Shown: positions 10,011 to 64,000 of the stretch, in pieces
How the letters are laid out: every line of letters starts with the position of its first letter
How positions within the stretch are numbered: position 1 is the first letter of the stretch
Assembly: GCA_002269645.1 (NCBI GenBank)
Contig: NIVC01000636.1
Coordinates: forward strand, 248,001-312,000
Length of the DNA: 64,000 nt
Direction: 5' to 3'
Source of the DNA: Macrostomum lignano
Lineage: Eukaryota
The notes under the pieces: generated by a model
What the model was told of the DNA's origin: nothing
The model's input: the letters and a program-made list of their open reading frames with translations, nothing else
Databases searched by the model: none
Made by a program: the position numbers and the translations under genes

Positions 10011-11489
10011 CTACAGACACATCAAAAGCCCTGAATAAATGTGCATGTAGGTCCGATACTGCGCTTTCTAGCTACTTATAGTAGGTGACTAGCAATAAAA
10101 GTGCATAGAATGTGTGCGTGCAGCATAGTTTATTCTCCTAATTCAAAGCACGGCCTGCAGCTGAGTCAAGTATTATTGCCTGTCCATCAAGCCCTGGCCA
10201 ACGGGCACTCATTGCTGCTTTCCTGGCCAGCTCTCAGCTCTCACTCGCAGTTCAGCGCCTGCCTGCTCATTCGATCTCAAACCCAGACGGCCAGCGCCTG
10301 GCAACTGCACTGCTAGCATCCAACGCCTAGCGATCAATGCATCTCATGACCTTTCCTGCATGCTTTGTGGGCCAAGGAATGATGGAGATGTGAGGCTGCA
10401 GAAATTGAGAGGCAACTGTCTCAGCAGAAGTGCTTCTGGCCTTGAGAGTTGTGCGGGAGAGAGAGAGCTGCTCCCCACTCCGTCTTATTAGCGATTGCAG
10501 CCCCATCATTCCTCGCCTCTCTCCCGATATATGCTGTTCGCTTGGGGGGGGGGGGGAGCATCGCACGGGCACGGCTTCCCGCGGGAGTCTGGACTGCAGC
10601 AGAGGGGCGCTGCATGAGGCTGACCGGATCTGCAGGCTGCCATTCCTGCTTCTGTCTGGGGCATTCTGGGCAATGGGTTGAGTGACTTATCAAGTTAAGC
10701 TTAATATGTTCTCCTTCGTGACTCACTGCACTGCCAATGCAGAACATAAAATGGAGGCTGCTGTAGTTCAGAGGCGAGAAGGAGACGGAGAGAGTGAAGG
10801 AGAGAGAAGGATGGAGAGGGAGAGGAGCGATGTCGAGATGCAGAGGATGCCGCAGACTGAGCTCCCCACGTTTGGCAGTGCAGAGCTGGCAGCAAATCCG
10901 CAATTCCCTCCAGCCCATGCACGCAGCTTCTCGTCAAGACTCCGCCCGCGCCCGGCTCGCCTTTCCGCACCGCGCCGCTCATTTTGCATTTCGCCCCGGC
11001 CCGGCCAGCGCTGGCGGCGGCCGACAGTCTCGGCCGCAGTCGCGAGGCGGCTGCTCTTTGAAGTGCCTTCCCCTCCCTCAGTGCCACCGTCCACCATCCC
11101 GCGGCCGTCTACGCAGAGGGTGAAGCATTAAGAGGGCGTTTTTTTAGCTGACCGGAATTCCCGGCCCCGTCCTGTCGTCCCCCCCCCCATGTCTCCCGCA
11201 TCGCAGCAAATCGAATTCCCAGCAATCGCTTTGCTCTCATGGCTAATCAGATTCCCGCCGGCTCCATCGCTCGACCGGCCGCGTCTCATCGGACTCCGCG
11301 GACCGCAGAATCTGCCGCTTGCGCTTTCAGGACTTCAGATTGGACCCCGGGGAGCTCGGCGATTGAACAGCCGATTGAAATTTATATGCAATTCGACTGA
11401 CATTGGGTGTAGTGGCGGACTTGAATACTGATGGGGTAAGTGGACAGCATTTAAGGACGAAATTAAATGAGCAGAGTGACATAGGCTAA

Positions 11490-13410: not shown

Positions 13411-13817
13411 GATACAGGAATTCGTTTTTTGCTTGGCTGATTTGCAGTGAAAAAATTGTCAAAGTAACGCGGGGACATCAGTAGTTCATATTTTATATAT
13501 TTGAACAGTCGCTATTGTACGTAAAAATATCGATTTTTCAAAACGTTTCGTTTTTAATTGCCGCTGCATCGTGACTTGGGTAATTATGCAGAAAAGCAAC
13601 ATTGCGCAGGCATGCGAATGCAGGGTACAGTACGGATTAACGCAGTGACTGGGCGAGTTTTCATAGCTCTGCTCTCATCAGCGCCTAAAACTAGAGTGTC
13701 AGCTGTGGTTCATTGATCAGAAAAGTCCTTCGATGTTGAAAATCGAAATGGCCGGAAGTGAACGTGCAACCCAGGTTGATTCTCCGTCTTGCCTGTGGTA
13801 GGTTTTTACCTCAGCCA

Positions 13818-41124: not shown

Positions 41125-42470
41125 GATACCCGCCATCTATCAAGAAGATACCCGCCATTCACCGAGAAGATACCCGCCATCTATCAAGAAGATACCCGCC
41201 ATTCGCCGAGAAGATACCCGCCGTCTATCAAGAAGATACCCGCCATTCACCAAGAAGATACCCGCCATTCGCCGAGAAGATACCCGCCGTCTATCAAGAA
41301 GATACCCGCCATTCACCAAGAAGATACCTGCTATCTATTAAGAAGATACCCGCCATCCATTAAGAAGATACCCGCCATCCATTAAGAAGATACCCGCCAT
41401 TCATTAAGAAGATACCCGCCATCCATCAAGAAGATACCCGCCATCCATCAAGAAGATACCCGCTATCCATCAAGAAGATACCCGCCATCCATCAAGAAGA
41501 TACCCGCCATTCATTAAGAAGATACCCGCCATCCATTAAGAAGATACCCGCCATCCATTAAGAAGATACCCGCCATCCATTAAGAAGATACCCGCCATCC
41601 ATTAAGAAGATACCCGCCATCCATTAAGAAGATACCCGCTATCCATCAAGAAGATACCCGCCATCCATCAAGAAGATACCCGCCATCCATCAAGAAGATA
41701 CCCGCCATCCATTAAGAAGATACCCGCCATCCATCAAGAAGATACCCGCCATCCATCAATAAGATACCCGCCATCCATCAAGAAGATACCCGCTATCCAT
41801 CAAGAAGATACCTGCCATCCATCAAGAAGATACCCGCCATCCATCAAGAAGATACCCGCCATTCATCAAGAAGATACCTGCCATCCATCAAGAAGATACC
41901 CGCCATCCATCAAGAAGATACCCGCCATCCATCAAGAAGATACCCGCCATCCATCAAGAAGATACCCGCCATCCATCAAGAAGATACCCGCCATCCATCA
42001 AGAAGATACCCGCCATCCATCAAGAAGATATCCGCCATCCATCAAGAAGATACCCGCCATCCATCAAGAAGATACCCGCCATCCATCAAGAAGATACCCG
42101 CCATCCATCAAGAAGATATCCGTCATCCATCAAGAAGATACCCGCCATCCATCAAGAAGATACCCGCCATCCATCAAGAAGATACCCGCCATCCATCAAG
42201 AAGATACCCGCCATCCATCAAGAAGATACCCGCCATCCATCAAGAAGATACCCGCCATCCATCAAGAAGATACCCGCCATCCATCAAGAAGATACCCGCC
42301 ATCCATCAAGAAGATACCCGCCATCCATCAAGAAGATACCCGCCATCCATCAAGAAGATACCCGCCATCCATCAAGAAGATACCCGCCATCCATCAAGAA
42401 GATACCCGCCATCCATCAAGAAGATACCCGCCATCCATCAAGAAGATACCCGCCATCCATCAAGAAGATG
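41125..42470. repeat. 22-nt tandem repeat (CCATCCATCAAGAAGATACCCG)
   Basis: About 60 copies. Confidence 0.96.
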
Positions 42471-44024
42471 AATTCATTCTGATGCTGAAGAAATCCCCTG
42501 ATAATTAGTTGATGTTTGCGGCCGCGCTGAGGTCTCACTTAAAAAATTGGGCAGTAAAAGTGCGCCCACGAGCGGCATTGTTTGCTTTCATCTCTGCCGC
42601 TTTGAGACTGGCCGCTTCAAAGGCAGAAGCCTCCCTTTGAGAGATAAAGTAGAGGGAGGGATGGGGGCAGCGCAGGCCGGTCCGCAGCGGTGGGAGCATC
42701 CTCGGCAGCAGAATATTTTTAATATACCATTGGTTTTTCTGACTCCGGCTTATCTGCCAGGCCTCCCCATTGTTTACCCAAGGCCAAGCTGCGAGCTCGG
42801 GACCCACCAGACCATGACTGCCGCATCCCAGCAGAAGTTGCCAGATGGCATATCCATCGAGATGCACTGGGGTGGGGGGGGGGGCAATCCCGAGCCAGGG
42901 AGATCCCCGAACCGGAGTCTGGAGCAGTAAGTCTCCGCCAACTCTTCACGATGAGTCATCAAAAACTTATTCAACTAGAAGAAGAGCGGCTGGACTCGCA
43001 CCAATGAGGACCCTCAAGGCACAGAGAGTGCACCTGCGTGACGATGGAACTACCTGCCTGGTTGCGGGATGATGTCGCCGAAGGCCTGCGAAGATTTCCT
43101 ACGAAACGAAGTTCCCTGTTCTAGTTGACACAGACAGCGGCTTTCTGCCTATCATTGAGTTCTGCTCAGTTCAGCGTCTGAAAATGAAACTGGGGGAAGG
43201 CCCGCCACTCCGCACCCTCGTTCAAGGACTCCTTGACCCGGCCACCCCCGGCCAAGCCCCGGACAAGCCCCGGACAAAAACTTACCAAAGTCACGCGCAG
43301 CGGCTGAGCTCGGATCGCCAGGCTGGCGGGCAGTGACATCGTAGGTCAAGAGAGCCGCAGACCGGGCGCAACTCGCTGCTCACTGAGTGAGGGAAGTCGG
43401 ATCGCATTTTATAATCAGTTCGGACTCGAAGGTGGAAAATCCCCCCCCCCAATTCCCCAAGGTGCACATCGGCAATATTCGAATTCGATTGCCCTGTTCC
43501 ACCTTGGCTGGGCGAGGCCCCGCACTCCGCTCTAAGTGCTTAGTCTGGTTGCCGGGGGCGGTGGGAGGGCGGAACTCGCCTGTCAGCAGCTGCGCGGGCT
43601 GAGTTCTCCGCTGCTGCTTTAGCCTTGGCTGAGCTGATCCCAGATGAGGCGGAGATGGAGGCTGGGTAATGCGGGAAGGGGCTGCAACTCGACCCCGCAG
43701 CAGCGGCAGCAGCAATTTTGCGCCTGAAGACCTCAGAGACGCGCGAGTGATCGGGACGGGGGGTCGACCGCTTGCTAGGCAGCTTGATGAGGCTTCATCT
43801 CGCGCCCAGACTCCTTCCCTACGCCCTGGCTCACCTTGGCACGCCATGCTTGTCACGGCGGCTTTTTGATACTCAATGCCACTTCGGGCTGCCCGGGCAT
43901 CGCGTGACGCCCCGGCTTCTCCGGGAGACGCTCGGCTGGCAGCCCCCCCCACCCAGATTTTACCGAGCCTGCCTGTCTTTCAGTTGCGCCACTTTCTGCA
44001 GCCCTGGCTTGCCTTCTGAAGCTC

Positions 44025-44545
44025 GCTTGAGGGAATCTTGCTTGAGGGAATCTTGCTTAAGGGAATCTTGCTTGAGGGAATCTTGCTTGAGGGAATCTTG
44101 CTTGAGGGAATCTTGCTTGAGGGAATCTTGCTTGAGGGAATCTTGCTTGAGGGAATCTTGTTTCAGGGAATCTTGCTTGAGGAAATCTTGCTTGAGGGAA
44201 TCTTGCTTGAGGGAATCTTGCTTGAGGGAATCTTGCTTGAGGGAATCTTGCTTGAGGGAATCTTGCTTGAGGGAATCTTGCTTGAGGGAATCTTGCTTGA
44301 GGGAATCTTGCTTGAGGGAATCTTGTTTCAGGGAATCTTGCTTGAGGAAATCTTGCTTGAGGGAATCTTGCTTGAGGGAATCTTGTTTCAGGGAATCTTG
44401 CTTGAGGGAATCTTGCTTGAGGGAATCTTGCTTGAGGGAATCTTGCTTGAGGGAATCTTGTTTCAGGGAATCTTGCTTGAGGGAATCTTGCTTGGGGGAA
44501 TCTTGCTTGGGGGAATCTTGCTTGAGGGAATCTTGCTTGAAATAA
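44025..44545. repeat. 15-nt tandem repeat (CTTGAGGGAATCTTG)
   Basis: About 34 copies. Confidence 0.95.
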
Positions 44546-44596
44546 TCTTTATCAGGAATCTTCTTGAAGAAATCTTCAAGGGAATCATGCTTATTC

Positions 44597-45382
<786 letters not shown>

Positions 45383-46059
45383 GAACTGGTGGGCCATGAG
45401 CAGCGCAGGGATGGACAGAGGAGGGGGCGCGCATTCAAATCGATTTATTCGCAACGCACAGCACGGAACCTGCAGGGTCAGAGAGCGCAGTTGAGCAGAG
45501 GGGGGGGGGGGTTCTGCTCGAATTCCCCCGGCTGAGATCGAAGATTAATTTGGCTTCGACGGCCGGGCGACCGGGAGGCGCGAGGCCCGGAACGGGAAAC
45601 TTCTTTGACTTCTGGCCTCCCCTCTCGGCCCTCTCCGAACAGGAAAGCCGGGCCTGCTGCGCACTCGGGCTCGAATTTTCGTCTCAAATCTGAGGTTCGA
45701 TATTTACGGGTGTTGTGCACTTTTGAGTAGAGCAGCCTCTGCCCTGGAGACCGGTGGCTAGACGGAAGGACTCACTGAGGCTCTCCATCAGGGCAGCTTA
45801 CGCTCGTATGACAGCTTAGTGATTGATTGATTGACAGCCTGGGGTCAGCTGCAATAGGAAAAATATTTAGAGTCGTCCGAAAGAATTTTGGGAAATTGTG
45901 ACTGTATTGGTTCTCAACTATTCCCCCGAAGACACGCCCTCTTCCTCGTGCTGAATGCCCCCCCCCCCGAAAAAATTCCTGGTTGGGCGCAACACTGGAT
46001 CTTCGCACGCACGAAGCACCCCTATTTTTCTAGATCCTATCAGTGTACATAGTATTGAC

Positions 46060-46925
46060 TCATTGGCCCAGCAGTGTACAAAGACACAAGGGCCCAGCAA
46101 TGTACATACACACAAAGACACATGTACATAGACACATACACAAGGGCCCAGCAATGTACATAGACACAAAGACACAATGTACATAGACACATACACAAGG
46201 GCCCAGCAATGTACATAGACACAAAGACACAAGAGCCCAGCAATGTACATTGACACAAAGACACAAGAGCCCAGCAATGTACATAGACACAAAGACACAA
46301 TGTACATTGACACAAAGATACAAGAGCCCAGCAATGTACATTGACACAAAGACACAAGAGCCCAGCAATGTACATTGACACAAAGACACAAGAGCCCAGC
46401 AATGTACATTGACACAAAGACACAAGAGCCCAGCAATGTACATAGACACAAAGACACAATGTACATTGACACAAAGACACAAGAGCCCAGCAATGTACAT
46501 TGACACAAAGACACAAGAGCCCAGCAATGTACATTGACACAAAGATACAAGAGCCCAGCAATGTACATTGACACAAAGACACAAGAGCCCAGCAATGTAC
46601 ATAGACACAAAGACACAATGTACATTGACACAAAGACACAAGAGCCCAGCAATGTACATTGACACAAAGACACAAGAGCCCAGCAATGTACATTGACACA
46701 AAGACACAAGAGCCCAGCAATGTACATTGACACAAAGACACAAGAGCCCAGCAATGTACATTGACACAAAGACACAAGAGCCCAGCAATGTACATAGACA
46801 CAAAGACACAATGTACATTGACACAAAGACACAAGAGCCCAGCAATGTACATTGACACAAAGACACAAGAGCCCAGCAATGTACATTGACACAAAGATAC
46901 AAGAGCCCAGCAATGTACATATACA
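46060..46925. repeat. ~34-nt tandem repeat (GACACAAAGACACAAGAGCCCAGCAATGTACATT) with shorter deletion variants
   Basis: Read directly. Confidence 0.94.
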
Positions 46926-48231
46926 CAAAAGTTCAGCAATGTACATAAACCCTTTAGCCCAGCAACATACTTCAATACATAGACCCAAGAGCCCAGTAAA
47001 TGTGCATAGACCCCTTATTTATCACGATAGATAAGAAGGCTTCATCCCTTTTCACCTTTTATTGGTTTTTACTAGCATGTATTGAAGCCGAATCTCGGGA
47101 CAAATGTGATGCAGAACACACAGATATTCAATCTTCTGCTGAGCCATAGCCAAAGTGTGCTGGGATTTCACTTCAGAATACTACAGTATAGTCTTCATTC
47201 CCAAGCAGATCGAAATGATCCAAGGTGAATTCGTGTAATTTGCACGGGAGTGAAAAACGTGTTTTATTAATTTAATGCATAACGTTACTGTAAAAAAATA
47301 ATTTGATCTTAAGAAGCCTCTGACTTCGTATTTCAAATTTCAAAGCGAGCTGGAGTCTCTCTTAGATAAATTTTAAGGATTTGTTAATTGAGATTCAAAG
47401 CAAAGGCAGTGGAAAATCTCCGGCTTTAATTTTCGGCAAGCGCGCAAAGAGAGAACTGAGCTTGCCTTATTATTCAGTCTCAGACTCTCTGCGTCATCAG
47501 CCACTTCTGGCCGGGACTTGAAAGCTTGAATCAAACAAAGAAGACTCAAACGAATTTAGACCCAGGTACAGGTAATGCCAGTCAACCAGACCGGACTCAA
47601 AGCTCGTGAGCACCAAGTTATCAATAAATCAATAAGGTGTGAATTTGAATTGCGATTGTTTTGTTTCATTCAACAAAAATATATATTAGAAAGTTATGAA
47701 AGTGATTCCCGGATATATACTTAGAAATACTTGTTTTTGTGTACTTTTATTTTCAACCGCCGTGATATACTTATCTATCCTGGGTAGAAAAACAAAACTG
47801 ATTTTTGATTACTGAAACTGGAATTAGCATCCAGCATCTGAGATGCGGCTGGGTTGCTAGGGCCTACAGACTAATCTTGGTCACAAATCGCTGCAGCACA
47901 GCTGAGCTCTGCTCCTGCTCTCACTTTGGCTGATTATCTAACTCACTGGCTGAGTCCACACTGAGCTTTCCTTGCCTAATCCCCGGGTGTCTGGGGGAGA
48001 CTGGGAATAGAGAGGCTGGGCGCCTCATCAGTCGGATTGCGCGCTGAGGCTGGGACTCGGACAGGAGTTGGCGCTGAACTTTTTTGGCATCCCGATGGGA
48101 TTCGAGCTCTGACAGCGAGATTCGAGATTTGCTCTGGGGATTTGGGCTGGAGTGACGGGAGACACGCGGTGAGCATTTGCTCCTGCCGTTCATCAATACA
48201 ATTTCCCCTTTAATCAGTTGGTTTGTTAATG

Positions 48232-48622
48232 GGATTGAGATTGATCAACTGATCTATGGGTGAGATTGATCAACTGATCTATGGGTGAGATTGATCAACT
48301 GATCTATAGGTGAGATTGATCAACTGATCTATAGGTGAGATTGATCAACTGATCTATAGGTGAGATTGATCAACTGATCTATAGGTGAGATTGATCAACT
48401 GATCTATAGGTGAGATTGATCAACTGATCTATAGGTGAGATTGATCAACTGATCTATAGGTGAGATTGATCAACTGATCTATAGGTGAGATTGATCAACT
48501 GACATATAGTGAGATTGATCAACTGATCTATAGGTGAGATTGATCAACTGATCTATAGGTGAGACAGATCAACTGATCTGTAGGTGAGATTGATCAACTG
48601 ACATATAGGTGAGATTGGTCAG
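48232..48622. repeat. 25-nt tandem repeat (GAGATTGATCAACTGATCTATAGGT) containing the palindrome TTGATCAA
   Basis: About 15 copies. Confidence 0.94.
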
Positions 48623-49051
48623 AACGGATTCATAGGTAAGATGAAACTTGATATGAGTGCGAATTTGCTGCCAAAAAATCAAAGCACAAGGCGTCATCAA
48701 GTTATAGATGCCAGAGCAGTTAACATTGAAAACGGGGTGTATCATTTGCCATCATTTTTTCATTTGCCATCGTTGGCAGCTGAACAGCACTTTCACATGG
48801 CAACTGTAGCCGCGGAACCATCGGGTCCTTAGCCAGCCTACGGTATCGCGTCATTTTCCAATAAGACATATTCTTGTAACCATAGCAACCCACTGAATTC
48901 TACTGACTAATACTTTATACTCGCAGATGTAGGCAGTCGGGTGGGAGTTTGGGAGATTTTTCCCAGATTTTCACAAAACCGGCCTGGTGTTGGAGGAAAT
49001 GAGGCGGCAAACAACAAAGTCGGCAGTAACGACTAGCGGGCGGGCGGCTCG

Positions 49052-49966
49052 TCAGTTGCCCCTGACGGTGGCCAGCAGGCGGGCGGCGCACGGCCGGCTG
49101 CAGCCGATCACGTCGGCGGCCACGGGGTCGGCAGGCGCGTGTGCGGCCCGCACGGCGGCCAGCAGGGCGTCGGCCTGGCGGCCGCAGGTCACCGGCTCGG
49201 ACTCGCGCAAGCAGAGGTCGGCGGCCACGGTGACGAAGGCGCGGTCGCAGGCGCCGGCTTCGATGCCGTAGTGGCCCGCGCAGGCGGCGCACAGGCGGTG
49301 GCTGTCACACAAGGCGGCCGCCTCAGCGTCCATTGCCAGGCCGAAGCGGCGCCGCACCTGGGCGCAGTTGGCCAGCGGCGTTCCGGCCGGAAAGCAGGCG
49401 CCGCCCTCGGCTTCGGCTGCCTCCTCGCCTTCGGCGTCGTGCCGAGCCAGCATCCCGGCCAGCCGGCGCAGGTCGCGGTCCCGAGCCGCGTTCTCCGCTG
49501 CCTGCGGCGGCGGCGCCACGGCGGCGGCCCGCTTCGGCGGAGACGCGTCGGGGGCCTCGGCGGCCTCGGTGACCTCCGCGGCGGCCTCGGCGGCGGCAGC
49601 TGCGGTGGCTGCCACGGAGCGCAGCTCGGCGTTCTCGGCACGCAGGCGTCGCAGCTCGTGGGCCTGGCGGCGGAGCTTCCGGACGGCGGTGCGGCCGGCC
49701 CGGACGGCCTCGGTCAGGGCTTCGTCCAGCTCCAGGCGTCGCCGCAGGCCACCGAGCGCAGCCTCGCCTGCCAGCTCGGCAGAGTTGGACGCCAACGCCA
49801 GCTGGCTGCCCTCGGCCCGACGGTCCAGCGCGAGGTCGCCAGCGTACACACCGTCGTCGAAGTCGTCGTCGAAGTCGCCTTCCGCGTCGGAGATTCGGGC
49901 GAAGGCACTCAGCAGCAGCAGCAGCAGCAGCGGCAGCGGCCGCAGGCAGGTGTAGCGGACAGTCAT
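49052..49966 (-). CDS. Intronless secreted protein, 304 aa: signal peptide, acidic stretch, coiled coil, Ala-rich linker and C-terminal conodipine/group IX sPLA2-like Cys domain with a degenerate active site
   Basis: Signal LRPLPLLLLLLLSAFA. The segment LCDSHRLCAACAGHYGIEAGACDRAFVTVAADLC has the same spacing as the conodipine motif C-D-x-H-D-x-C-Y-x-C-x-x-H-F-G-x5-C-D-x-A-F-x6-L-C (recalled, not searched). Ten Cys in residues 191-293. Codon style matches the other genes. Confidence 0.8.
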   Translation of the reverse strand: MTVRYTCLRPLPLLLLLLLSAFARISDAEGDFDDDFDDGVYAGDLALDRRAEGSQLALASNSAELAGEAALGGLRRRLELDEALTEAVRAGRTAVRKLRRQAHELRRLRAENAELRSVAATAAAAAEAAAEVTEAAEAPDASPPKRAAAVAPPPQAAENAARDRDLRRLAGMLARHDAEGEEAAEAEGGACFPAGTPLANCAQVRRRFGLAMDAEAAALCDSHRLCAACAGHYGIEAGACDRAFVTVAADLCLRESEPVTCGRQADALLAAVRAAHAPADPVAADVIGCSRPCAARLLATVRGN

Positions 49967-52734
49967 GTCTCTGCGCTCCGCTGTGTCAATCCGCTCCCCT
50001 TCTCGCCAAAAAGCGCCGCTCCAGTCTTTTAAGGCTTTCCCAGACTTATCTGAGCTGCACCGGGGCGGGGTGGCGAGATGGCGCGGCGGGTGGCCGTTTG
50101 TTTATCCCCACTAGTCCTGTCCCCGCCTGCCCTCGGGCCTGGACCAATGACAGCCGGCTCGCGTACTGCGGCATGCGGACTGGCACCTGCTGTTTGACTG
50201 GGAAGGGGCGGCAGTTCCCCAGGGCTGAGCTGAGGGGAGCAGTTTGAGCGCTGGGAGAGAGATGAGGAGAGATGAGAGAGATGAGATGAGGATCTGCAGC
50301 TGGGAATGCGGAGGGGGCCAGGTCCCATCCCGACACTTACAGGCTTTTGTTTCCTCACGTGGGGACAGAAAACAGAAGGCAGACAGACAGAAACACTGCA
50401 CTGCCGGCACTGAATACGGGGGGGGGGGGTACGGGCTGAGAATAAGGGAACTGCTCAGTCTCACAGGACCTCAGCTCCGACACGACGTATAATTAAGAGT
50501 ATAATGCAAGACATGCGGGACTGCTGTGCTAATTTCTGCTGCAATTTCTGAATTGATCTCCAGCCTCGCAGTTTTTCCCAGCTCTCGAAGCGCCCGCTGA
50601 CGTCCCACCTCCGTCCCGGAGTGCAGCGGGGTACAGCGGCCCGGCGGTCAGTCTGGAGTCTGTACTCTGGCATTGGTTTGAGTCAGGTGTGCCAGAAAGC
50701 GGAAAACCCTCTGCCTGGGCCAAGATAGACTTTGAGAAGGGCTGGAATGATGAGGGCTAGGGGAAAGGAGACGCATGCTGACAGCAATATGCATCTTGCT
50801 CCATGGCCTGAGTTGCCATGGCAACCGTGACAGAATTGGCGAGGCGTAGAGGCACGAGCGCGAGCCTGGAAGAAGAGGGAGCGGAAAGAGGGGAGCTGAG
50901 CAAACCGAGCCAAACTTTGCAGTTTTGTCCCTGAGAGCATCGGCCTCGTTGCTGGGAGAGACGGGAGCGACTTGAGCTCAGCTTCAAGCTTTGTTGTCCA
51001 TGAAAATTAGATGGATGTGCGGCAATTATTCATTTTTTCGAGCTCTCCTTTGAGCTCGCGGCACCGCCCTCCCAGCAATGTTTGCCTTTCCTCAACGACT
51101 CTTTGATGTCCGGGCCGATCGTGGCAATTTTCAGTCAAAAAAGCTGATCTCGAATGTACTTTAGTGGCCGCTGCCTTCCCAGATTTTTCCCGGGCATTAA
51201 GTCGGGGGATCTTGTGGGATTAGGAAAATTGCAGGCCGCATCGTAAAACTCTGCTGAGCTCGGATCGCCCCGGCGAGCCCATTGTGCAGCTATAATTGGA
51301 TTCCGAGGGCCGCCGCTGCCGCTCGCTCCGCCGTCCCCGGCCGAAATCTCGGCAATCGGATGGCGGCGCGGGGCACCGGGGAACTCTTTGAGGAAGCCGG
51401 CCTGTCCCGGCCAAGCTCTGAAACCCTGGGGATTTCAGTCAGTCTGCTTCCCCTTCCACTCTCTCTCGGTGCTAGTGAGCAGATTTGCCAGCCGCCTAAG
51501 GCATCAATTATTCCTCGTGTCCCTGTGTTATCCTCCTTCCTGAGAGCTGAGGGACCGGCTGCACTATTGCAGCCCCTCAGCCTCTCCAGCTCATGCCCGG
51601 CCTCATGTCTTGCATCCGCCGTTCTTGAGCCTCTCATTGTGAATTTTTAACGGACTTTCAAGCTCACGATTTCAGCCCATTCGCAAGTTCATGTGCGCAA
51701 TCGGAGTCTGCGTCAATTATCACAGATCTGCAAATGTCTGGTCCACGCTCTCTCCTGATGAGGAACAGAGCAACCGCAGCCCCACAATGCATGCAAGTTT
51801 TGACGCAGATGAGAAAGCAAGAGCTGGCTGTACTCTGTAAGTGGAGTGCGCCGACTCGATTGAGAATTTATCAATCAATTCATTTTTAACAGCATGAAAA
51901 AAAGCATTTGTCTGCCCACAGATGCCGTCTAGACAGCAACATGGGTCAGGACATACTCAGCAGAATTGGCAGGAGCAGCAGCCGAGCACTCAGCGCTACT
52001 CAGCGATTTGAGTAGCAATCAAAATCCGGCAGGGGCGCTCGGCACTAGCTGCAGGGAATTCATCCCATTTTTAATCTCCAATCTGCCATGCAGCGCCCGC
52101 TAAGTGATGACGCATCAATGTCAAAATTTTTCAGCCTATAACAAGCTTCTATTATGAATCCAAAGAAGGTCGCGAGTTCGAGTACCACACTAGACTTGTC
52201 GAGAAATTGTATCCTACGCAGGGAATGTGTCCCAAGGCGGAAGTATGCGGATGAGCAATTGCCATGGCAACCTCGGCATAAAGCCGTATTTAACAGTCAG
52301 ATGAAATGACACACACAGGCCGCGCTGGGTGCCATGAAATATAAATGCGCAGCGGGCTACTGCAGGCAGCCAGTTGAATAGGGGCAGGCGGGTATTGAGC
52401 CAAGCAGCGGCCAGGGCCAACTTGAAGCACCAATAAAATTGAGAAAAAAACTGTAGCCTGCGGCGTCGCTCCATCATCCTGCCGGAGTCGCCTGCCCAGG
52501 TGAGGGGATTGGGCCGTGATAAATTAAATTACAGCTCAGCGAGAGGTCTATGCGGGCTGGCAAGTACAGTTGGACACAATTAAGCAGGGCAAGTGCTCTA
52601 CGCTGGTACGAGTATAGAGGCTGAATCGCGGATCATTGGATTTTATGCGTTCATTTCTTCTACTTATAGTAACAAAGAAGCGCGAGAAATTCTTTTTTTA
52701 ATCTTTGATAAATATCATCAATATTTACCCCCTC

Positions 52735-54215
52735 CCAAGTGACTTGATTCTCGTGAACTGGAACCCCAAGTGACTGGATTCTCGTGAACTGGAACCCCAA
52801 GTGACTGGATTCTCGTGAATTCGAACCCCCCAAGTGACTGGATTCTCGTGAATTCGAACCCCATTAAGTGACTGGATTCTCGTGAACTGGAAACCCCCCT
52901 CCCAAGTGACTGCATCCTCGTGAACTGGAACCCAAGTGACTGGATTCTCGTGAACTGGAACCCAAGTGACTGCATTCTCGTGAACTGGAACCCCAAGTGA
53001 CTGCATTCTCGTGAGCTGGAACCCCAAGTCCTGGATTCTCGTGAACTGGAACCCCAAGTGACTGCATTCTCGTGAGCTGGAACCCCAAGTGACTGCATTC
53101 TCGTGAGCTGGAACCCCAAGTGTCTGGATTCTCGTGAACTGGAACCCCAAGTGACTGGATTCTCGTGAATTCGAACCCCCCAAGTGACTGGATTCTCGTG
53201 AATTCGAACCCCCCAAGTGACTGGATTCTCGTGAACTGGAAACCCCCCCTCCCAAGTGACTGCATCCTCGTGAACTGGAACCCAAGTGACTGGATTCTCG
53301 TGAACTGGAACCCAAGTGACTGCATTCTCGTGAACTGGAACCCCAAGTGACTGCATTCTCGTGAGCTGGAACCCCAAGTCCTGGATTCTCGTGAACTGGA
53401 ACCCCAAGTGACTGCATTCTCGTGAGCTGGAACCCCAAGTGACTGCATTCTCGTGAGCTGGAACCCCAAGTGACTGCATTCTCGTGAGCTGGAACCCCAA
53501 GTGACTGCATTCTCGTGAGCTGGAACCCCAAGTGACTGCTGACTGGATTCTCGTGAGCTGGAACCCCAAGTGACTGCATTCTCGTGACCTGGAACCCCAA
53601 GTGACTGCATTCTCGTGAGCTGGAACCCCAAGTGACTGCTGACTGGATTCTCGTGAGCTGGAACCCCAAGTGACTGCATTCTCGTGAGCTGGAACCCCAA
53701 GTGACTGCATTCTCGTGAGCTGGAACCCCAAGTGACTGCATTCTCGTGAGCTGGAACCCCAAGTCCTGGATTCTCGTGAACTGGAACCCCAAGTGACTGC
53801 ATTCTCGTGAACTGGAACCCCAAGTGACTGCATTCTCGTGAGCTGGAACCCCAAGTCCTGGATTCTCGTGAACTGGAACCCCAAGTGACTGGACTCTCGT
53901 GAGCTGGAACCCCAAGTGACTGCATTCTCGTGAACTGGAATCCCAAGTGACTGCATTCTCGTGAGCTGGAACCCCAAGTCCTGGATTCTCGTGAGCTGGA
54001 ACCCCAAGTGACTGCATTCTCGTGAGCTGGAACCCCAAATGACTGCATTCTCGTGAGCTGGAACCCCAAGTGACTGCATTCTCGTGAACTGGAACCCCAA
54101 GTGTCTGGATTCTCGTGAGCTGGAACCCCAAATGACTGGATTCTCGTGAGCTGGAACCCCAAATGACTGGATTCTCGTGAGCTGGAACCCCAAGTGTCTG
54201 GATTCTCGTGAACTG
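52735..54215. repeat. ~31-nt tandem repeat (GTGACTGCATTCTCGTGAGCTGGAACCCCAA and variants)
   Basis: About 47 copies, with some higher-order structure. Confidence 0.95.
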
Positions 54216-54789
54216 ACTCAGACTTAGTCTCACCAGAGCTAACACCTGCTTCTTGTACAGGGAACGGTCAGAATGCCCTATTTAGTGTCTAACCGAGACC
54301 TTCTGATTCATTATTACAGTTGCAGCTGCAAAAACTTGGAGCAACCTATCAATCAATACCCAGCTCAACTCTATACCGAGAGGAAAGGCAGAGTAACTTG
54401 CTCACTAATGCACTTTGAACCCGTGCTCATTCATCACAGCTCCATGCCCTCATTTCCGGAGCAGGATTTTCTTTAAGAATGGCAATTGCCTCAGTTATAA
54501 GGCTACCAAAATGAAGCAAGGCAATCAATAAGCTGGACTGCATTTTAGCCAATAGTAAAGACAAAATATTTCCAATTCAATATGCCATATAATTACAGCA
54601 ATCATGCAATGTACTCGTCATTACAATAGGATTAATAGGCGAAGTTCACTCTGAACAGAAGAAAAATTAAAATGAAATTTTTAAAACAACAGCTAACGGC
54701 ACGGCTGCACGGCGTAACAGCGGCAAAGTCTGAATTTTTATGGACACCCAACTGACACCGAACACTAGAGGCTGCGGGCAGCGAGCTGG

Positions 54790-55160
54790 GGTGGGTGATT
54801 GGGGGAGTGGGGGATTTGGGAAGTGGGGGATTGGGAAGTGGGGATTGGGGAGTGGGGGATTTGGGAAGTGGGGGATTGGGAAGTGTTGGATTGGGAAGTG
54901 TGGGATTAGGAAGTGGGGATTTAGGAAGTGGGGATTGGGAAGTGGGGGATTGGGAAGTAGGGGATTGGGAAGTGGGGGATTGGGAAGTGGGGGATTTGGG
55001 AAGTGGGGGATTTGGGAAGTGGGGGATTGGGAAGTGTTGGATTGGGAAGTGTGGGATTGGGAAGTGGGGATTGGGAAGTGTTGGATTGGGAAGTGTTGGA
55101 TTAGGAAGTGGGGATTTGGGAAGTGGGGATTTGGGAAGTGGGGGATTGGGAAATGGGGGC
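54790..55160. repeat. G-rich 14-15-nt tandem repeat (GGGAAGTGGGGGATT)
   Basis: About 25 copies. Confidence 0.93.
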
Positions 55161-55904
55161 TTGAGAGGTGGGAGAACGCGACAATTTTGGGATGCAATCA
55201 TAGTGTAAGCAGCGAGAAACAGAGAAATGTAATTAAAATAAAGTGAAAGAGTCAATTCGGGCAAACGAGAGACTTGAGTGCTGTCGCGACTGCTCAAACC
55301 GCAGCAGCAAAGATAGGGAGCACAAATGGACAGTAAATAAGCAAGGACAAAAAGCATTAATCGGGACTTTATTCCCGCAAAAATCCACGCAATGAGCAGA
55401 AACAAATAAAGGTACAAAAAGTCCGCACCCGCCGCTGCAGACAAGAATTTTTGCTTTTGCAGGCACACCTGCGATGGCAGGCTGGGAGATTGGGCAGCAG
55501 AGGGGGGGGGGCAAAGCGGCCGCAAGTGAGCAGCTCTGAGTACAGGGGGAGATTGCAAGTCCCAGAGAGCAAGACTTTTTGCGATCAGGGGGAGGAGGGA
55601 CAGAAGGAGGAATCCGATTTTATCCCCCCCCCCGAGTGTACACCGGCTGGACGTCGCTAGCCGCGCAGAGCAAGCGGAGATGCTGCAAAGCGCCGATCTC
55701 AGCTGAGGAAGGCGGGCAGGCAGGTGCAAAATCAAAGACAAGACGACAGGAAGAGGACTGAGCGCGGGGCCGGCGATGCAAAGCTATTTTGGGACTCTCC
55801 GAGCATCACAAGCTCCGAGTCCGCATTGAATTTCGTTGTTAAGCCCCCCGCCCATCCCCGGCTGCCTCCCCTCGCGGATTATCCCCAGCAGCTGAGCTGG
55901 AGCT

Positions 55905-56438
55905 TCATCCCTTGGCCTGTGCGGCCAGCCACTCCAGGCCGGCCGTGAGGCCCTCGCCGCTCAGGGCGCAGCAGGCCTGAATGTGCCAGGGGTTGGCCCG
56001 GATGCTGGTGAGGTCCAGCGCCTGGCTGATCTCGGCCGCGGACAGCCGGCCGTTGATGTCCTGCTTGTTGGCGAGCACGAGCAGCCGCGCCCGCTTCAGG
56101 TGGTCCGAGGCGAGCATCTTGTACAGCTCGTCCTTGATGACGGCCAGCCGCTGCCTGTCGGAGGAGTCGATGACGAGGATGATGAAGTCGGTGCTCTGGT
56201 AGTAGGTCTCCCACGTGGCCCGGATGGAGGTCTGGCCGCCCAGGTCCCACATCACGAAGTGGATGTTGCGCCAGCGCAGCTGCTCCACGTTGGAGCCGAT
56301 GGTAGGCGAGGTGTGCACGGCCTCGCCCAGCACCAGCTGGTACAGCACGGTGGTCTTGCCGGCATTGTCCAGCCCGACCAGCAGTACTTTGTGCTCTTGG
56401 GTACCAAAAAGGCTCCACAGCCTGGCTATTATCAGCCC
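55905..56438 (-). CDS. ARL5: ADP-ribosylation factor-like protein 5 (ARL5); the initiator Met is not encoded in this exon
   Basis: After TTGCAG| the exon reads [30 protein letters not shown] (ARL5-type N terminus and P-loop). G3 WDLGGQ, G4 NKQD, G5 CAL. Stop at 55905. No internal introns. Confidence 0.92.
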
Positions 56439-56479
56439 CTGCAAGTTGGCGAGTGCCGTGATTTACTGATAGGCTTCAA

Positions 56480-59400
56480 CTGAACTCGAATTAACAACCA
56501 GGTAGGATCCTGGGATTGGGATCCTACTTGACCCTTATTCAATACAAGGCTGGATGAGACAAGGAATTAGGCAGGCAGTCAAGATGGAATTGAAAGTTTC
56601 ATGCTTGCATATCGAACTATTTGACAACAGGGAATAATCTGGTCTGTTCTTGCCACATTCTCTCAAACAAACCACATGCTAAGAGTTCACCTTCGACCTG
56701 CTGAATCATCTTGGGACCAGTCTGGTTCAGTATAAGCTGTGGTCCATTTCTCTTCTACTCCCTTGGGTGTGGGATGAGAGATGCTAATGCCAGACCTGGG
56801 GAGTTGCAGCTCTCTACAAAAGTACATGTTTTTTGTTATATGGATATATAAGCTTGTAGACAGGACATACAAATACATATATGGCTTTGGGAATGCATAT
56901 TGCCTATATCTAATTAGTAATATTTGCCAATCAACAACAGAATTAATTTAGACTTATTAAAAGATCATTGGAGCCCTTGATTTAATTGGTAAGAAGGGGG
57001 GGGGGGTAAAACAGAAGAAATAAATTAATTTTGCCCATTTCAAAGCTTTTGTAAAGCAGAGGGAACTATCAAATTCTTAGGTTAGGGACTCAAGCAATAG
57101 AGATCTTCTAAGCAATTGAGGCTAAAGTTGAGATAAATTCAATCCTAGCCATTCTTATAATATTAATAAATAATAATTTACAATATTACACTTGCCTTAA
57201 TGGCCAGATGTGCAACCAACAGCTTAGCTATAGCTATTATGCAATTATGAAAAGTTATAGGAAATTAATTAGCTATAGATATAAACATAAGTAAAGAATA
57301 AGAAAATGTATAAACTGCTATAGATATAGATACAAGAAAGTTTTTGTTATGGTTGAGCTCTTGCTTGTTGGATAAGTTCACAATATATAAAATTTTATTT
57401 TTGACAAAAAATCTAATATATAGTATTGTATATTAAAAATAATTATTAACAATATATTATTACCTATAACTTTAAAGCTATCATCTATTGGAATAAAAAA
57501 TATTTTAGGACATAAAGGAATCTTAATAGCCAAAGTTAGTGATATAATTATTGAATGAAATAAGAAAATCATGCTAAAAAATAGAAAAAAGAAAGAACTC
57601 ATGATGAACTTATGAAAAGAAAGAGAAAAGATTGTCTATAAATGAAAGATTGAAAAAATATACATTAAAAGACCTTTCTTTTGCTGATTTGTTTTTTTCA
57701 TATACTAAAAATGGTTTATCAATAGTGAATAGGTATCTATGCATACATGCCCAACCTCAAAATTTCACCTGTCCGATGCAACTTAGTTTTATCTAGATTA
57801 GTTAGTTCCTCCTAATTGCAACTTAGTTCTTCTTGATTGCAACTCAGTTACCCCAATTGCAACTTAATTTTCAATTTGTATGATTTTCCTTGCCTTTTTT
57901 CTTTTCTTCTTTTTCTCTTTTCTTTTCTCTCTCTCCTCTCTCCTTTCTTTTCTTTTTCTCTTTCTCTCCTTCATTCTTTTCCCAATTTTTTCAATTTTCG
58001 CTTTTTTGATTTTGCAACTTACCTTGGCTAATGTTCCCAAAGATGTTCCCAAATCAGTACATGTATTTTTATTAAGCTCTAGCTCATTGCTAATAAATGG
58101 ATGAAATATTATGCTAGCTAAGACATCAGAAATTATGCTTTTTTATAGTTGATATAGCCCATAATAGTAATAATTTTATACTTTTCTACTATGCTAGGCC
58201 TAGGGCTAAAAAAGGTCTACATTTTATTTTACTAATTAGCAGATAATCAATGTTTAATAGGTTTTAAAATTGTTAGACCTTTAACTTAAATAAGATAAAT
58301 AGCATAGTAACTAAGTAAGCTGTAGTAGTAGGTAGGCTGTAGTAGGCCAGTGCAGGCAAAAATAGGCCCACCTAATAGTAATAGAATGGATATTGGATAA
58401 GATAAAATTGAATGGTTTAAATTGAACCAACAAAAGTTAAGAGTAAGACAAAGTGCTGACAAGCAAAAAGAAATATACAGAATAGAGAGTACTCGTATAT
58501 ATATACTAACGTAACCCACTTTTATAGCAGGAACTAAACTAAAAAGACTAACACTAGTCGCCTACCTTGACTGAGATTAAATTAAGCAAATAAAGACCAA
58601 CCCTACCTCCTATACATAGTGATGGTGTGACGTACTTGCCTATATTTGGAAGATTATTCGGCCTATTTTTTAGCACTTATTATCACACTTAAAATTATTT
58701 TGAGATTTACTGAAACAATTAAACTCAAATAGTTAAATTCGTTGAAATACCATATTGAGTTTCTTTACTTTTGTTTTTTTACACTATTCTGCCATTTTAA
58801 TTTTAGATTTTACACGAAACAAACGTGAACAATAATGCCAGTAAAGTGTAAAAAGTTACACACCCAGTTTTTTTGGGGAAAACGTTACCTTCAAATTGCG
58901 TTCAAAGAGCACAATGAAATTGAAAATAATATTGTATTTTGATTTCGTTTGTCTAGTTCAAATTAAAATTGCAAGTTAGAAGCTTATAGAATGGGTAAAA
59001 TAAATCACAAGAGCATTTTTATTTTTTCATTGGGTAAGCGTGTGTAAACCCTGGGTAATTTCAGGTACGTTTTTGGGGTAATGTCTTACCCAGCAATTAA
59101 ACACTCATTTATTGGCCTCATCATCTATATTTTATGAATAATTATTCTATGATTTATGCTGCATAGGCGATAGCAAGTTATTTTCAATTTCATTGCGCTC
59201 TTTGAATGCAATTTGAAGGTAACGTTTTCGGGTAACTGGGTAACTTTTTACACTTTACCATAAAGCTTGAACTGCAGAGCAAACATCTGCAGATAGCAAG
59301 CATCCCCAGATATTGTTGAAGCATCCACCCAGATAGCAAGCATCTTCCGAGATAGCAAGCATCCCCCAGATATTGTTGAAGCATCTACCCAGATATAAAA

Positions 59401-61930
59401 AATCCTGCAGATAGCAAGAATCCCTAAATTGCAAGCATCCCTGGATAGAAAGAATCCGATACATGTAGCCTAGCTTATCAAGTGCAATAATCCTTTGTTT
59501 GCCAATGCAGTTAATCCTTGGTTTATCAAGCGCAGTAATCCTTGGTTATCAAGTGCAGAAATCCTTGGTTTATTAAGTGCAGTAATCCTTGGTTTATCAA
59601 GTGCAGTAATCCATGGTTTATCAAGTGCAGAAATCCTTGGTTTATCAAGTGTAGTAATCTTTGGTTTATCAAGTGCAATAATCCTTGGTTTATCAAGTGC
59701 AGTAATCCTTGGTTTATCAAGTGCAGTAATCCTTGGTTTATCAAATGCAGTAATCCTTGATATATCAAGTGCAGTAATCCTTGGTTTATTAAGTGAATGA
59801 AAAGAAAATTTCACTACTTTTATATACTTTATATACACTACTAAGATTTGAACCTAGGTCGCTGCATTAGTAGTCCAGTATGTTCAGCTCTAGGCTAGCT
59901 CTCATTGAAGTTAAATGAATTTGTAGCTCATATAAATCAACACTCACACAAAGTCAGGTAGAGTAAAAGTCACATGAAGCAGTTATGATATAATTAATTT
60001 CTTAGGCAGTCAGTATCAGTGTCTATACTAACAATATGGTTAGGCAATATAAATCAAGTACTGTGCTATGCTTCTACACTCAACACTAATGCAATTCAAC
60101 TAGTATACAGACAATAAATAAAAAGCCTATTGTGATGCAATCTATTTCAGAATCAGAATTCAACCAGTCAGTTTTTTTCTTAGCATTCTTATGATGCATT
60201 TAAAGTTGAAAGAGCTGCTTGACCTTTGCAAAAAGCATGTTTTTCAAATATTTAATCCCTTTAGCATCAAGCAATTTCTTAGCAACATTGCAAGTACTGT
60301 CATGGAAAAATTTCTGATTGAACAGTGCATGTTCAAAGAAAATTGGCTTAGCCATTTTTGCTAAAACTGATCACATACTTACCTAGATAGATAGATACCT
60401 ACCAACAGACCATTTTTAGTATATAGAAAATGTTATTCTTAAAAAAGTGGCAATTTTTTTCTAGTTCTTTTAATTAAAGCATGTTTAAAGCATTATATGG
60501 CATTTTTTTGTTTTACAATACTTGCACTTTGTGTCAATTTTGTTATATAATACCCATTGGAAATTAGTGAGAATTGAAATAGATGTAGCTTTGATTGCAA
60601 AAATGTTTCAATCATAGCTTGCTAGCACACAATCCTTATATTCACTTTCATTATACAATGCCCTTAATGGAGAATTTGTTAAGAATGCATTGTAAAATGA
60701 AAGTGAGGAGGTATAGAAGCAAAAATAAGGGAGAATATTAAGAATTGGATATAGCCATGAAGAATCTTACAATTTTAGCTTATTAGTGCACAATCCTTAT
60801 ATTCACTTTCATTATAGGCCTACGATGCCCTCAATAGAGAATTTGTTAAGAATACATTGTAAAATGAAAGTGAGGGGGATATAGCAAATAAATGAAAGAC
60901 TGAAAAGAAATGGGTATGACTGTTAACAAATTATCCCTTATTTTCATTTTTATCCCCCTCACTTTTGTTTTAGAATGCATTCTTAATAAAGTCTTATATA
61001 TTGGTCTATCTATCAAATTGCAGCCATTTGTTGTCTTGGTATCTATTTTCTTAATTAACTAGTATTTCTAAAGCTGCTAAAAATTATCATTGATTTTAAA
61101 TGAGTGACCAATAGTACAAAATTATATTTACACTACTATAAAAGTACAACATAATATTGGTTAAAATTATTTCTATACATACTTCTGAAGAGTCAGAATC
61201 AACATTTGAAAATTGACCTTCCATTTTTTGCAAATTGCAAGTGTAGTGTCCTGATATATTGCTAATCCTTGTTTTGTAAAAGGTTTTGTTTATTCACTCA
61301 AATTTTGGATGCAATAATAAAAATATTATGTTGCATCTTTATTTGAAGAATAACAGCATTGTTTATCTATAGACCAACACATTTTTTTGTTTTTTTTCTA
61401 CAAAGACATTTAATCACTCTTTAATTGGTGGTTCCTTAAAATTAGAAAGGATAGGTAGTAGATAATGGATAATGGATAATAGTAAAAGATGGCCGGTAGA
61501 GGGGGGGTTGCTACTTTAGATATATTAGATAGGTAAGTACTAGATAACACTGTATATTAGTAGCAATTTTAGTGTATATAAGTCACACTTTGGAAGATTT
61601 TAAAAGATTAGAAGATTGTATTTTGTCATTTGAACTAGAAATGATCAAATAGATTTACATCATGGCTATATTGATATATTGCCATGATAAAACTGGTTTC
61701 TTTATATACTTTAGTCAAATTTAATAATAGTAAGAGGCTGCCAAAGCCACTTTTCAATTCTAAGCAGATCTATAAAAGTATAAGGGATTATGTTATTTAA
61801 CCTGACAATAATTTAGAGAAATTAGTCTAGTTGTACATATGCAGTTGGTTACTAGGCCCATTTGCCCATGGGTTAAATATGAGATTTGTCTATTTGTTTT
61901 AACTAAAGACAAAGTTATTAACTAATATAG
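56480..61930. other. AT-rich, largely CpG-depleted block between the divergent ARL5 and HS6ST genes
   Basis: Abrupt compositional switch at both ends. Only about 4 CG dinucleotides found by eye in 59461-61930. Contains internal direct and inverted duplications. Confidence 0.8.
59480..59800. repeat. 24-nt tandem repeat (ATCAAGTGCAGTAATCCTTGGTTT)
   Basis: About 13 copies. Confidence 0.9.
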
Positions 61931-61955
61931 TCATTTGTGGCTATCGCGCCTGCAG

Positions 61956-63911
61956 CACCGCCTGTGGTGCACTGGCTTAGTGCGCCATCTCTGGCGGCGT
62001 CGCAGGCGGCAGGCAGCCATTGTGGCCGCTGCCGTCACCGCCCTGCTGGCGCTCCTGCTGCTGGCCAGCGCCTCGCTCAGAAGGCCGCTGCCGCCGCCCT
62101 TCCAGCTGGAATCCGCCAGCACCATCGAATCCGTTGACCTGTTCGACTCTCGCCGCGATGTCATCGTGCTGCTGCACATGCAGAAGACCGGCGGCTCGCA
62201 CCTCAACCGCCAGCTCGTCTCCGGCTTGCGCCGACCCGACATGCGCTGCCAGTGCGGCCTCGGCGGCCTCGGCGGTGCGCGCCGGCGGAAATGGCGCTGC
62301 AGCTGCCGCAACAGCCGCGGCGACCTGTGGATTGTGAGCCGCTACAGCACCGGCTGGCTCTGCGGCCTCCACGCCGACTTCGCCGCGCTGTCTGCCTGCG
62401 TGCCCGGCCAGCTGGCCGCGCTCGACTCCGACTTTGAGAGGCCGCGCCGCCTCCGCTACGTCACCATGCTGCGCCGGCCGGCCGACCGCTTCCTGTCCGA
62501 GTGGCAGCACGCGCGCCGCGGCGCCACCTGGCGGAAATCGCAGCCCACCTGCCGCGGCCGCCGGCCTCCGCCCTGCCGGACTGGCGACGGCGCCTGGCGC
62601 GGCGTCTCCCTGGCCGAGTTCGCCGCCTGCCGCGCCAACCCGGCGCTGAACCGGCAGGCGCGCATGCTGGCCAACGCCAGCGGCCTGCCCTGCCGGGCCG
62701 TCTTCGCCAACGGGAATCGAACCGCGGACCTACTGCTGGCCAGTGCGCTTCACAATCTGGTAGGGATGGCGGCGTTCGGCCTGACAGAGTGGCAGGTGAG
62801 CGAGCTGCTGGGAAGCTGGGACTTTTATGGAGTTGAGTATCTGGGATATCTGATGGTGTTGAGGATCTGGGATATCTGATGGAGTTGAGGATCTGGGATA
62901 TCTGGTGGTGTTGAGGATCTGGGATATCTGATGGAGTTGAGGATCTGGGATATCTGATGGAGTTGAGGATCTGGGATATCTGATGGAGTTGAGGATCTGG
63001 GATATCTGATGGAGTTGAGTATCTGGGATATCTGATGGAGTTGAGGATCTGGGATATCTGATGGAGTTGAGTATCTGGGATATCTGATGGAGTTGAGGAT
63101 CTGGGATATCTGATGGAGTTGAGGATCTGGGATATCTGATGGTGTTGAGGATCTGGGATATCTGATGGTGTTGAGGATCTGGGATATCTGATGGAGTTGA
63201 GGATCTGGGATATCTGATGGTGTTGAGGATCTGGGATATCTGATGGAGTTGAGGATCTGGGATATCTGATGGTGTTGAGGATCTGGGATATCTGATGGGG
63301 TTGAGGATCTGGGATATCTGAATCTGATGGAGTTGAGGATCTGGGATATCTGATGGAGTTGAGGATTTGGGATACTGAGGGAGCTGTAAAGACTCTTCAA
63401 GCGGATTTGCTGTTGTCACGCGGATGTCACTCCACCAAGCACCACTCTCGGACCCGCGCAGATCCTGACGCAATACCTGCTGAGCAGGCGCCTCGGCCTG
63501 AGCTTCAGCCGCCTGTTCTGGCAGCAGGACGCCACCGTCGCCTCTAATTGGCGCGCCAGCGGCAACTTCAGCCTCGTCGCCGACGCCGGCGACCTCCAGC
63601 AGAGGCGACTGGCGGAGCTCGCCAACCCCGCCGACGCCCGCCTGTACGCAGCGGCCGAGCGGCTGTTTTTCGGCCAGGCCCGCCGCCTGCTGGCTCGGGA
63701 GCCGCTGCTGTCGGCCGGCCAGCGGGCTCGAGTCCGGGACGCCGACTCCGCAATCGGCGGCGACGCACTGACCGCGCTGGCCCGCCGGGTGCTGCTGGAG
63801 CTGGGCGCCGTTGAAGTGGACGACGCCGAGAAGGCAGACATCCGGCGCCGGGTGCGCAAGAAGCTCCTGCGGGCTGGCAACGACGAGGCCGAGTCGGATT
63901 CGAACTCGTGA
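61956..63911 (+). CDS. HS6ST: Heparan sulfate 6-O-sulfotransferase (type II Golgi membrane protein), 2 exons; initiator Met not found
   Basis: Exons ~61956-62795 and 63462-63911, joined by a GT-AG phase-0 intron. Basic cluster RRRRR followed by a hydrophobic signal anchor. 5'-PSB VLLHMQKTGGSHL, WIVSRYSTGWLCGLHADF, 3'-PB TMLRRPADRFLSEWQH, NRQARMLA, FGLTEWQ|ILTQYLL. Stop TGA 63909-63911. Confidence 0.92.
62822..63375. repeat. Intronic 26-nt tandem repeat (GATATCTGATGGAGTTGAGGATCTGG), HS6ST intron
   Basis: About 21 copies. Confidence 0.95.
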
Positions 63912-64000
63912 CTACGGATTCTAGACGGACTACAGCGGGTCCGGCTTGAGTTTCTGAGCCAGCTGCATGCTCTGTACCGGTAATGCGAACTGGGGATGGA

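Follow-up and report, generated by a model that had tools for sequence, protein, structure and literature searches.

Introduction

Initiation of translation at the AUG of a spliced leader (SL) has been known in flatworms since 2006, and the mechanism considered here is therefore not new. Every SL reported from parasitic flatworms ends in ATG, and the splice acceptors of these animals are often common to cis- and trans-splicing (PMC12582326). In Schistosoma mansoni, the SL AUG lies in frame in 28% of those transcripts that are trans-spliced, and over 40 cDNAs require it for translation initiation (Cheng, Cohen, Ndegwa & Davis 2006, J Biol Chem 281:733, as cited in PMC9851317). As this class is outlined in the cited source, the locus described here resembles it in three respects: the SL terminates in AUG, the exon receiving it carries no AUG ahead of the conserved N-terminus, and an in-frame junction would make the SL AUG codon 1. 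It differs in that Macrostomum lignano is a free-living macrostomorph and not a schistosome, in that the codon made would complete the Met-Gly of a lipidated GTPase, and in that the M. lignano gene, ARL5, is known from genome, annotation and homology, whereas the schistosome cases, according to the same outline, come from cDNAs and translation assays.

The slORFs identified with slORFfinder (PMC9851317) share with the present case that the leader provides the start codon. Most of them are novel or alternative ORFs starting from NUG codons (PMC9851317), whereas ARL5 is a canonical, conserved housekeeping ORF. A further parallel is found in outron/SL1 trans-splicing of monocistronic nematode genes, where an unpaired 3' acceptor lies at the first exon and the upstream outron is discarded. 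In contrast to the flatworm leaders, nematode SL1 lacks a terminal AUG and adds no coding sequence.

An earlier note on this DNA, which read the terminal AUG of a flatworm SL as the initiator codon of ARL5, had made this reading dependent on the source organism. Both premises of this reading hold: M. lignano is a free-living flatworm (Rhabditophora, Macrostomorpha), and its single SL of 35 nt, CGGTCTCTTACTGCGAAGACTCAATTTATTGCATG, terminates in ATG and is followed directly by a GTAAG donor in the SL RNA gene (PMC8629364). About 30% of the M. lignano genes are trans-spliced, with [T/C]TNCAG as the enriched trans-acceptor motif (PMC8629364), and the terminal ATG of the Macrostomum SL is treated as translation start codon in the M. 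cliftonense/M. hystrix genome paper (G3 2023). Here we analyse ARL5 in a stretch of 64,000 nucleotides of M. lignano DNA, termed the window throughout, and compare it with its copies in the same genome and with its homologues in other animals. The literature that we searched yielded no paper tying the SL AUG to myristoylation.

Results

The window encodes ARL5 without a start codon of its own

ARL5, ARL5A and ARL5B are ARF-like GTPases of the trans-Golgi network that recruit GARP. An N-myristoylated amphipathic helix holds ARL5-GTP on this compartment (PMC6829661). Judged by domain, motif and homology searches, the protein encoded on the minus strand at 56438-55905 is ARL5, that is, a member of the ARL5 subfamily of the ARF family. 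It matches Pfam Arf (PF00025) at 1.3e-64 over profile positions 7-173/174, contains the G1 (GLDNAGKT), G3 (WDxGGQ) and G4 (NKQD) motifs of the Arf-family G domain as well as the P-loop and Gly2, and retains all 64 residues that are invariant in the homologue alignment. Among solved structures, human ARL5/ARL5A and a chain labelled 'ADP-ribosylation factor-like 8' (1yzg) match best; ARL5 chains in the PDB score 1e-77 to 1e-73, versus 1e-57 for ARF1, and nearly all named matches among the 120 best homologues are ARL5, 5A or 5B. Full-length identity to the aligned animal ARL5 proteins is 60-70%, with P-loop and Gly2 kept. In contrast to ARL5, ARL5A and ARL5B, the M. lignano gene lacks both a genomic start codon and introns.

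The coding sequence is a single unbroken frame of 177 codons and a stop, which opens with GGG (56438-56436), closes at TGA (55907-55905) and ends in translation with ...AQAKG. Across the upstream boundary, the minus strand reads ...TAA ATC ACG GCA CTC GCC AAC TTG CAG/GGG CTG ATA ATA GCC AGG CTG TGG..., where, as below, the slash marks the splice junction. This confirms the earlier claims that ARL5 has no ATG of its own and that its exon opens at Gly2 directly after an acceptor; the span given in the earlier note ended at 56445 simply because it took in the TTGCAG. An in-frame TAA (56465-56463) lies 9 codons (27 nt) 5' of Gly2, with no ATG between it and the Gly codon. Since the upstream frame is closed, the unspliced pre-mRNA cannot give an N-terminally extended ARL5. 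The earliest in-frame Met is residue 63, within VMWDLGGQ and thus, as had been pointed out before, deep in the G domain, beyond the P-loop and switch I. Closure of the upstream frame, together with the loss of the P-loop on initiation at Met63, implies that unspliced RNA cannot make ARL5 at all. The features of the locus are listed in Table 1.

Table 1. Features of the ARL5 locus, in window coordinates
Feature	Position	Strand	Evidence
ARL5 coding exon, codons 2-178 (Gly2 to Gly178), intronless, without own ATG	55908..56438	-	translation, Pfam, ARL5 structures
TGA stop codon	55905..55907	-	sequence
TTGCAG 3' splice acceptor, putative SL trans-splice site, junction 56439/56438, phase 0	56439..56444	-	trans-acceptor motif; annotated transcript/CDS start 56438
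In-frame TAA closing the upstream frame	56463..56465	-	sequence
Presumed outron and promoter region, 31.5% GC, repeat-rich	56445..61958	-	opposite-strand neighbour, composition, tandem repeats
AATAAA about 530 nt past the stop, possible polyadenylation signal	55368..55373	-	read from sequence
Rejected micro-exon candidate ATG/GTAAAG, edge of 60-bp tandem repeat	59259..59261	-	chance-level count, no GT[AG]AG
Rejected micro-exon candidate ATG/GTATTT	58751..58753	-	chance-level count, no GT[AG]AG

The homologues place the missing residue precisely. Residue 1 of the window protein aligns with residue 2 of the ARL5 structure chains, and Met1 of the orthologues aligns exactly one residue ahead of the M. 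lignano exon start. The N-terminus could be located in 118 of the 120 best homologues, and among these Met-Gly is missing only in the M. lignano proteins, which argues that the absence of the Met is not due to chance. The N-terminus encoded in the window (GLIIAR) and that of a second M. lignano paralogue (GVALAK) both conform to the loose pattern for N-myristoylation, G-{EDRKHPFYW}-x(2)-[STAGCN]-{P}.

The spliced leader is the probable source of the initiator methionine

The hexamers preceding the frame, TTGCAG in the window and in the copy L001 and TTTCAG in the copies L003, L004 and L007, all fit the [T/C]TNCAG motif of M. lignano trans-acceptors. Taken together, the species, the sequence of its SL, the acceptor motif, the start of the public gene model and a layout common to five gene copies lend indirect support to the reading of the SL AUG as the ARL5 start. 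It is thus very likely that a functional, intronless ARL5 receives its initiator Met from the terminal AUG of the SL, trans-spliced at TTGCAG/GGG immediately before 56438.

In the proposed mechanism, trans-splicing would join the SL end ...UUAUUGCAUG to the exon GGGCUGAUA... in phase 0. As the exon starts at the residue aligning to position 2, the SL AUG would correspond to Met1 of the homologues. The SL-exon junction predicted at 56438 is ...TTATTGCATG joined to GGGCTGATAATAGCC, and it would be spelled ...CAATTTATTGCATG/GGGCTGATAATAGCC in raw reads. The mature mRNA would read ...UUAUUGC-AUG-GGG-CUG-AUA..., with the SL AUG as codon 1 and a 5' UTR composed of the remaining 32 nt of the leader, i.e. 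of SL sequence alone. Its predicted product, M-G-L-I-I-A-R-L-W..., would be a full-length ARL5 of 178 residues, and with the Met removed, Gly2 would be exposed, so that the amphipathic N-terminal helix, which binds the trans-Golgi network, could be N-myristoylated. Three links of this chain are inferred: that reads bearing the SL map to exactly 56438, that ribosomes initiate at its AUG and that the product becomes myristoylated. A point against the proposal is that the SL puts a pyrimidine at -3 relative to the AUG, a poor Kozak context, although the nucleotide at +4 is G.

Public gene models start at the acceptor and leave little room for an upstream cis-spliced exon

The Mlig_3_7 gene models derive from RNA-seq transcripts that were cut at SL-read peaks and trimmed of the SL, with ORFs called by TransDecoder (PMC5730564). 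The public ARL5 model opens at the first base after the AG (56438), is 5'-partial and has no upstream exon. The window protein is 100% identical to a 5'-partial NCBI protein (P0001), and the exact Met-less protein of 177 residues is found on two contigs of GCA_002269645.1 (Mlig_3_7), NIVC01000636.1 and NIVC01000637.1. Over the 18 kb compared (window 45905-64000), the window and NIVC01000636.1 are 100% identical, and the other contig is a copy with 98.7% identity. Since the deposited protein begins at Gly and the upstream frame is closed by the nearby TAA, the transcript model must begin 0-2 nt from the acceptor. A transcript model without a complete CDS argues against a cis-spliced ATG exon, which would give a complete CDS. 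5'-partial models are common in Mlig_3_7 for trivial reasons, and many models of neighbouring genes are partial, some of them opening at or near CAG. As the 'partial' label by itself says little, the case leans on partial status combined with homology, and it is strong because homology fixes where the protein begins, exactly one residue ahead of the exon.

Searches for further traces of the transcript and the protein were negative within their scope. Exact Met-bearing ARL5 proteins were absent from a collection of 15 billion proteins, the SL-exon junction pattern had zero matches in metagenome contigs, as was to be expected, and neither ARL5 nor the Mlig gene ids occurred in the searched supplements of PMC5816591 and PMC5173321. 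Among the 120 best homologues, no transcriptome-derived relative was closer than the M. lignano paralogue.

The alternative that survives best is an upstream cis-spliced exon ending in ATG, either a micro-exon or a 5'-UTR exon, that feeds the same acceptor. Acceptors in flatworms can serve both cis- and trans-splicing, and ATG/GT sites are present upstream at 60413, 59261 and 58753. Two of these had been proposed as micro-exons in the earlier note, and both exist as described there; however, their number and sequence do not bear out the proposal. Upstream of the acceptor, three ATG/GT sites occur in the 5.5 kb that extend to the divergently oriented neighbour gene, compared to 5.95 +/- 2.3 expected; all three deviate from the species donor GT[AG]AG, and the one at 59261 lies at the edge of a 60-bp tandem repeat. 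Moreover, the RNA-seq-based models of all five copies lack such an exon and are 5'-partial at the acceptor, and the upstream regions of the paralogues have a single indel-polymorphic element in common and nothing else. We consider it improbable that an exon of this kind supplies the ARL5 start codon. By analogy with the acceptors of parasitic flatworms, which often serve both reactions (PMC12582326), a minor cis-spliced ARL5 isoform could exist alongside the trans-spliced mRNA.

All five M. lignano ARL5 copies share the layout and evolve under constraint

The comparison included five M. lignano ARL5 copies in two paralogue groups, one composed of L001 and L002, which are of the window type, and the other of L003, L004 and L007. 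The second paralogue encodes a protein that is 70% identical to the first and is represented by three copies (P0003, P0121 and P0122). The junction is TTGCAG/GGG in L001 and L002 and TTTCAG/GGT GTA GCC... in L003, L004 and L007, and in every one of the five copies an in-frame stop lies upstream, while an ATG and introns are lacking. Between the paralogue groups synonymous sites are saturated (pS 0.83) at a dN of 0.21, and the two near-identical window-type copies are separated by 4 synonymous changes and 0 non-synonymous ones. The lack of non-synonymous changes and a dN far below dS imply that the ARL5 genes are under purifying selection. From these comparisons, the ATG-less layout is old and the paralogues are anciently diverged.

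These data bear on the possibility that the locus represents a pseudogene truncated at its 5' end, or a dead retrocopy, and that no ARL5 is translated from it. Such an origin would be in line with the lack of introns and of an ATG and with a GC3 of 0.93 against AT-rich flanks. However, the 177-codon frame is intact and has lost none of the invariant residues, the substitution patterns between the duplicates and towards the paralogue are those of constrained genes, and the gene is included in a transcriptome-derived annotation. Furthermore, homologue searches matched only the five ATG-less copies in M. lignano and did not find an ATG-bearing ARL5 in this species. A dead gene is thus very unlikely.

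In the orthologues of Fasciola hepatica and Taenia crassiceps, the genome itself encodes an unbroken ATGGGC, and introns lie elsewhere, two in Fasciola and one in Taenia. All M. lignano copies are intronless compared to these intron-containing genes (L005 and L006), which suggests, at the level of gene structure, that introns were lost or the gene arose as a retrogene before the paralogues separated. In the Taenia gene, a TTTTCAG is located 25 nt 5' of the genomic ATG (L006 about 2966-2975); trans-splicing might use it as an SL acceptor and still retain the ATG of the gene.

Deletion of a single T would turn the SL end TTGCATG into the TTGCAG of the window, and the gene lacks introns, which raised the idea of a retrocopy that still bears the SL. 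It was rejected for lack of statistical support: when the SL was compared with the 40 nt 5' of the acceptor in both paralogues, a fraction of 0.29-0.49 of the 426 other [TC]TNCAG sites in the window scored at least as high.

Initiation independent of the SL and assembly errors are the least probable explanations

Translation could in principle start without the SL, either at the near-cognate TTG at 56444-56442, two codons upstream of the Gly codon, to give M-Q-G..., or at Met63. The TTG, however, is part of the outron and acceptor and would be lost on splicing, M-Q-G would destroy the Gly2 signal conserved in the homologues, and a protein initiated at Met63 would lack the P-loop and switch I, which makes this explanation highly improbable. 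That an assembly or annotation error removed a genomic ATG is hardly credible even in a repeat-rich, duplicated draft such as Mlig_3_7, as the same AG/GG junction is found on five independent contigs, in two paralogue groups and in differing surroundings.

Surroundings of the gene

No SL RNA gene was detected within the 64-kb window. The ARL5 copy in the window has a GC3 of 0.93 and a GC content of 0.65 amid surroundings of 31-39% GC, compared to a GC3 of 0.46 in the L003 paralogue, which has the same layout. Expression-linked codon bias, biased gene conversion or other processes are candidate causes of this contrast.

A repeat element of about 290-480 bp with an AG-rich core is situated 5' of both ARL5 paralogues (window 57742-58029, minus strand; L003 4630-5105) and holds 4-5 copies of AACTAAGTTGCAAT; the window has 4 such sites, where 0.3 would be expected. 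At window 57742-58029, a block of about 290 nt, which is 79% identical to L003 4688-5093 and includes a GCCAAG/GTAAGT-like site, was considered as a conserved upstream exon or promoter. L004 lacks this block at the orthologous position, which marks it as a mobile or indel element rather than a conserved exon. Given this absence at the orthologous L004 site, the upstream element is probably a small mobile element.

The divergent neighbour gene (window 61953-61962, plus strand; L001 4441-4452) encodes 428-429 aa without a Pfam match and is annotated as 5'-partial. Its model starts at CAG in L001 and 3 nt after CAG in L002, and the gene may also be trans-spliced. Tandem arrays occupy 52734-54215 (31 bp x 47), 54791-55172 (15 bp x 25), 59475-59795 (24 bp x 13) and 62827-63383 (26 bp x 21), the 26-bp array lying inside the annotated span of the divergent neighbour. 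Further low-complexity, stop-free stretches, which occur in all frames, extend over about 4364-6614, 8479-10078, 41606-42505 and 43963-45544. Three further stop-free stretches resemble, by eye, exons of known families: a mitochondrial carrier at 6527-7117 (plus strand), a C2-domain protein at 13720-15492 (minus strand) and an Rh/ammonium transporter at 35443-36192 (minus strand).

Discussion

That a leader ending in AUG can complete a myristoylation signal follows, as we infer, directly from known biology and would be of interest only if it were systematic. What ARL5 provides is a clean, homology-anchored case of a housekeeping flatworm gene that would be unable to make its protein without trans-splicing. 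Gene predictors that demand an ATG will mis-annotate such genes, as illustrated by the public models, which are labelled 'partial' and whose next Met would give a dead GTPase. M. lignano was described in 2021 as the only flatworm with stable transgenesis (PMC8629364). The design of transgenes in this species must reckon with the SL AUG, and ARL5 offers a simple reporter of SL-AUG initiation.

Dependence of ARL5 on the SL AUG would predate the split of the two paralogues, whose synonymous sites are now saturated, and would be absent from the fluke and tapeworm orthologues. We regard as possible, though doubtful, the wider proposal that this dependence is old and obligatory in Macrostomum and one instance of a more general loss of genomic ATGs from genes for N-myristoylated Met-Gly proteins. 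If this were true, trans-splicing would act both as an irreversible ratchet and as a checkpoint, in that a lipidated, membrane-competent GTPase would be produced only from SL-spliced mRNA.
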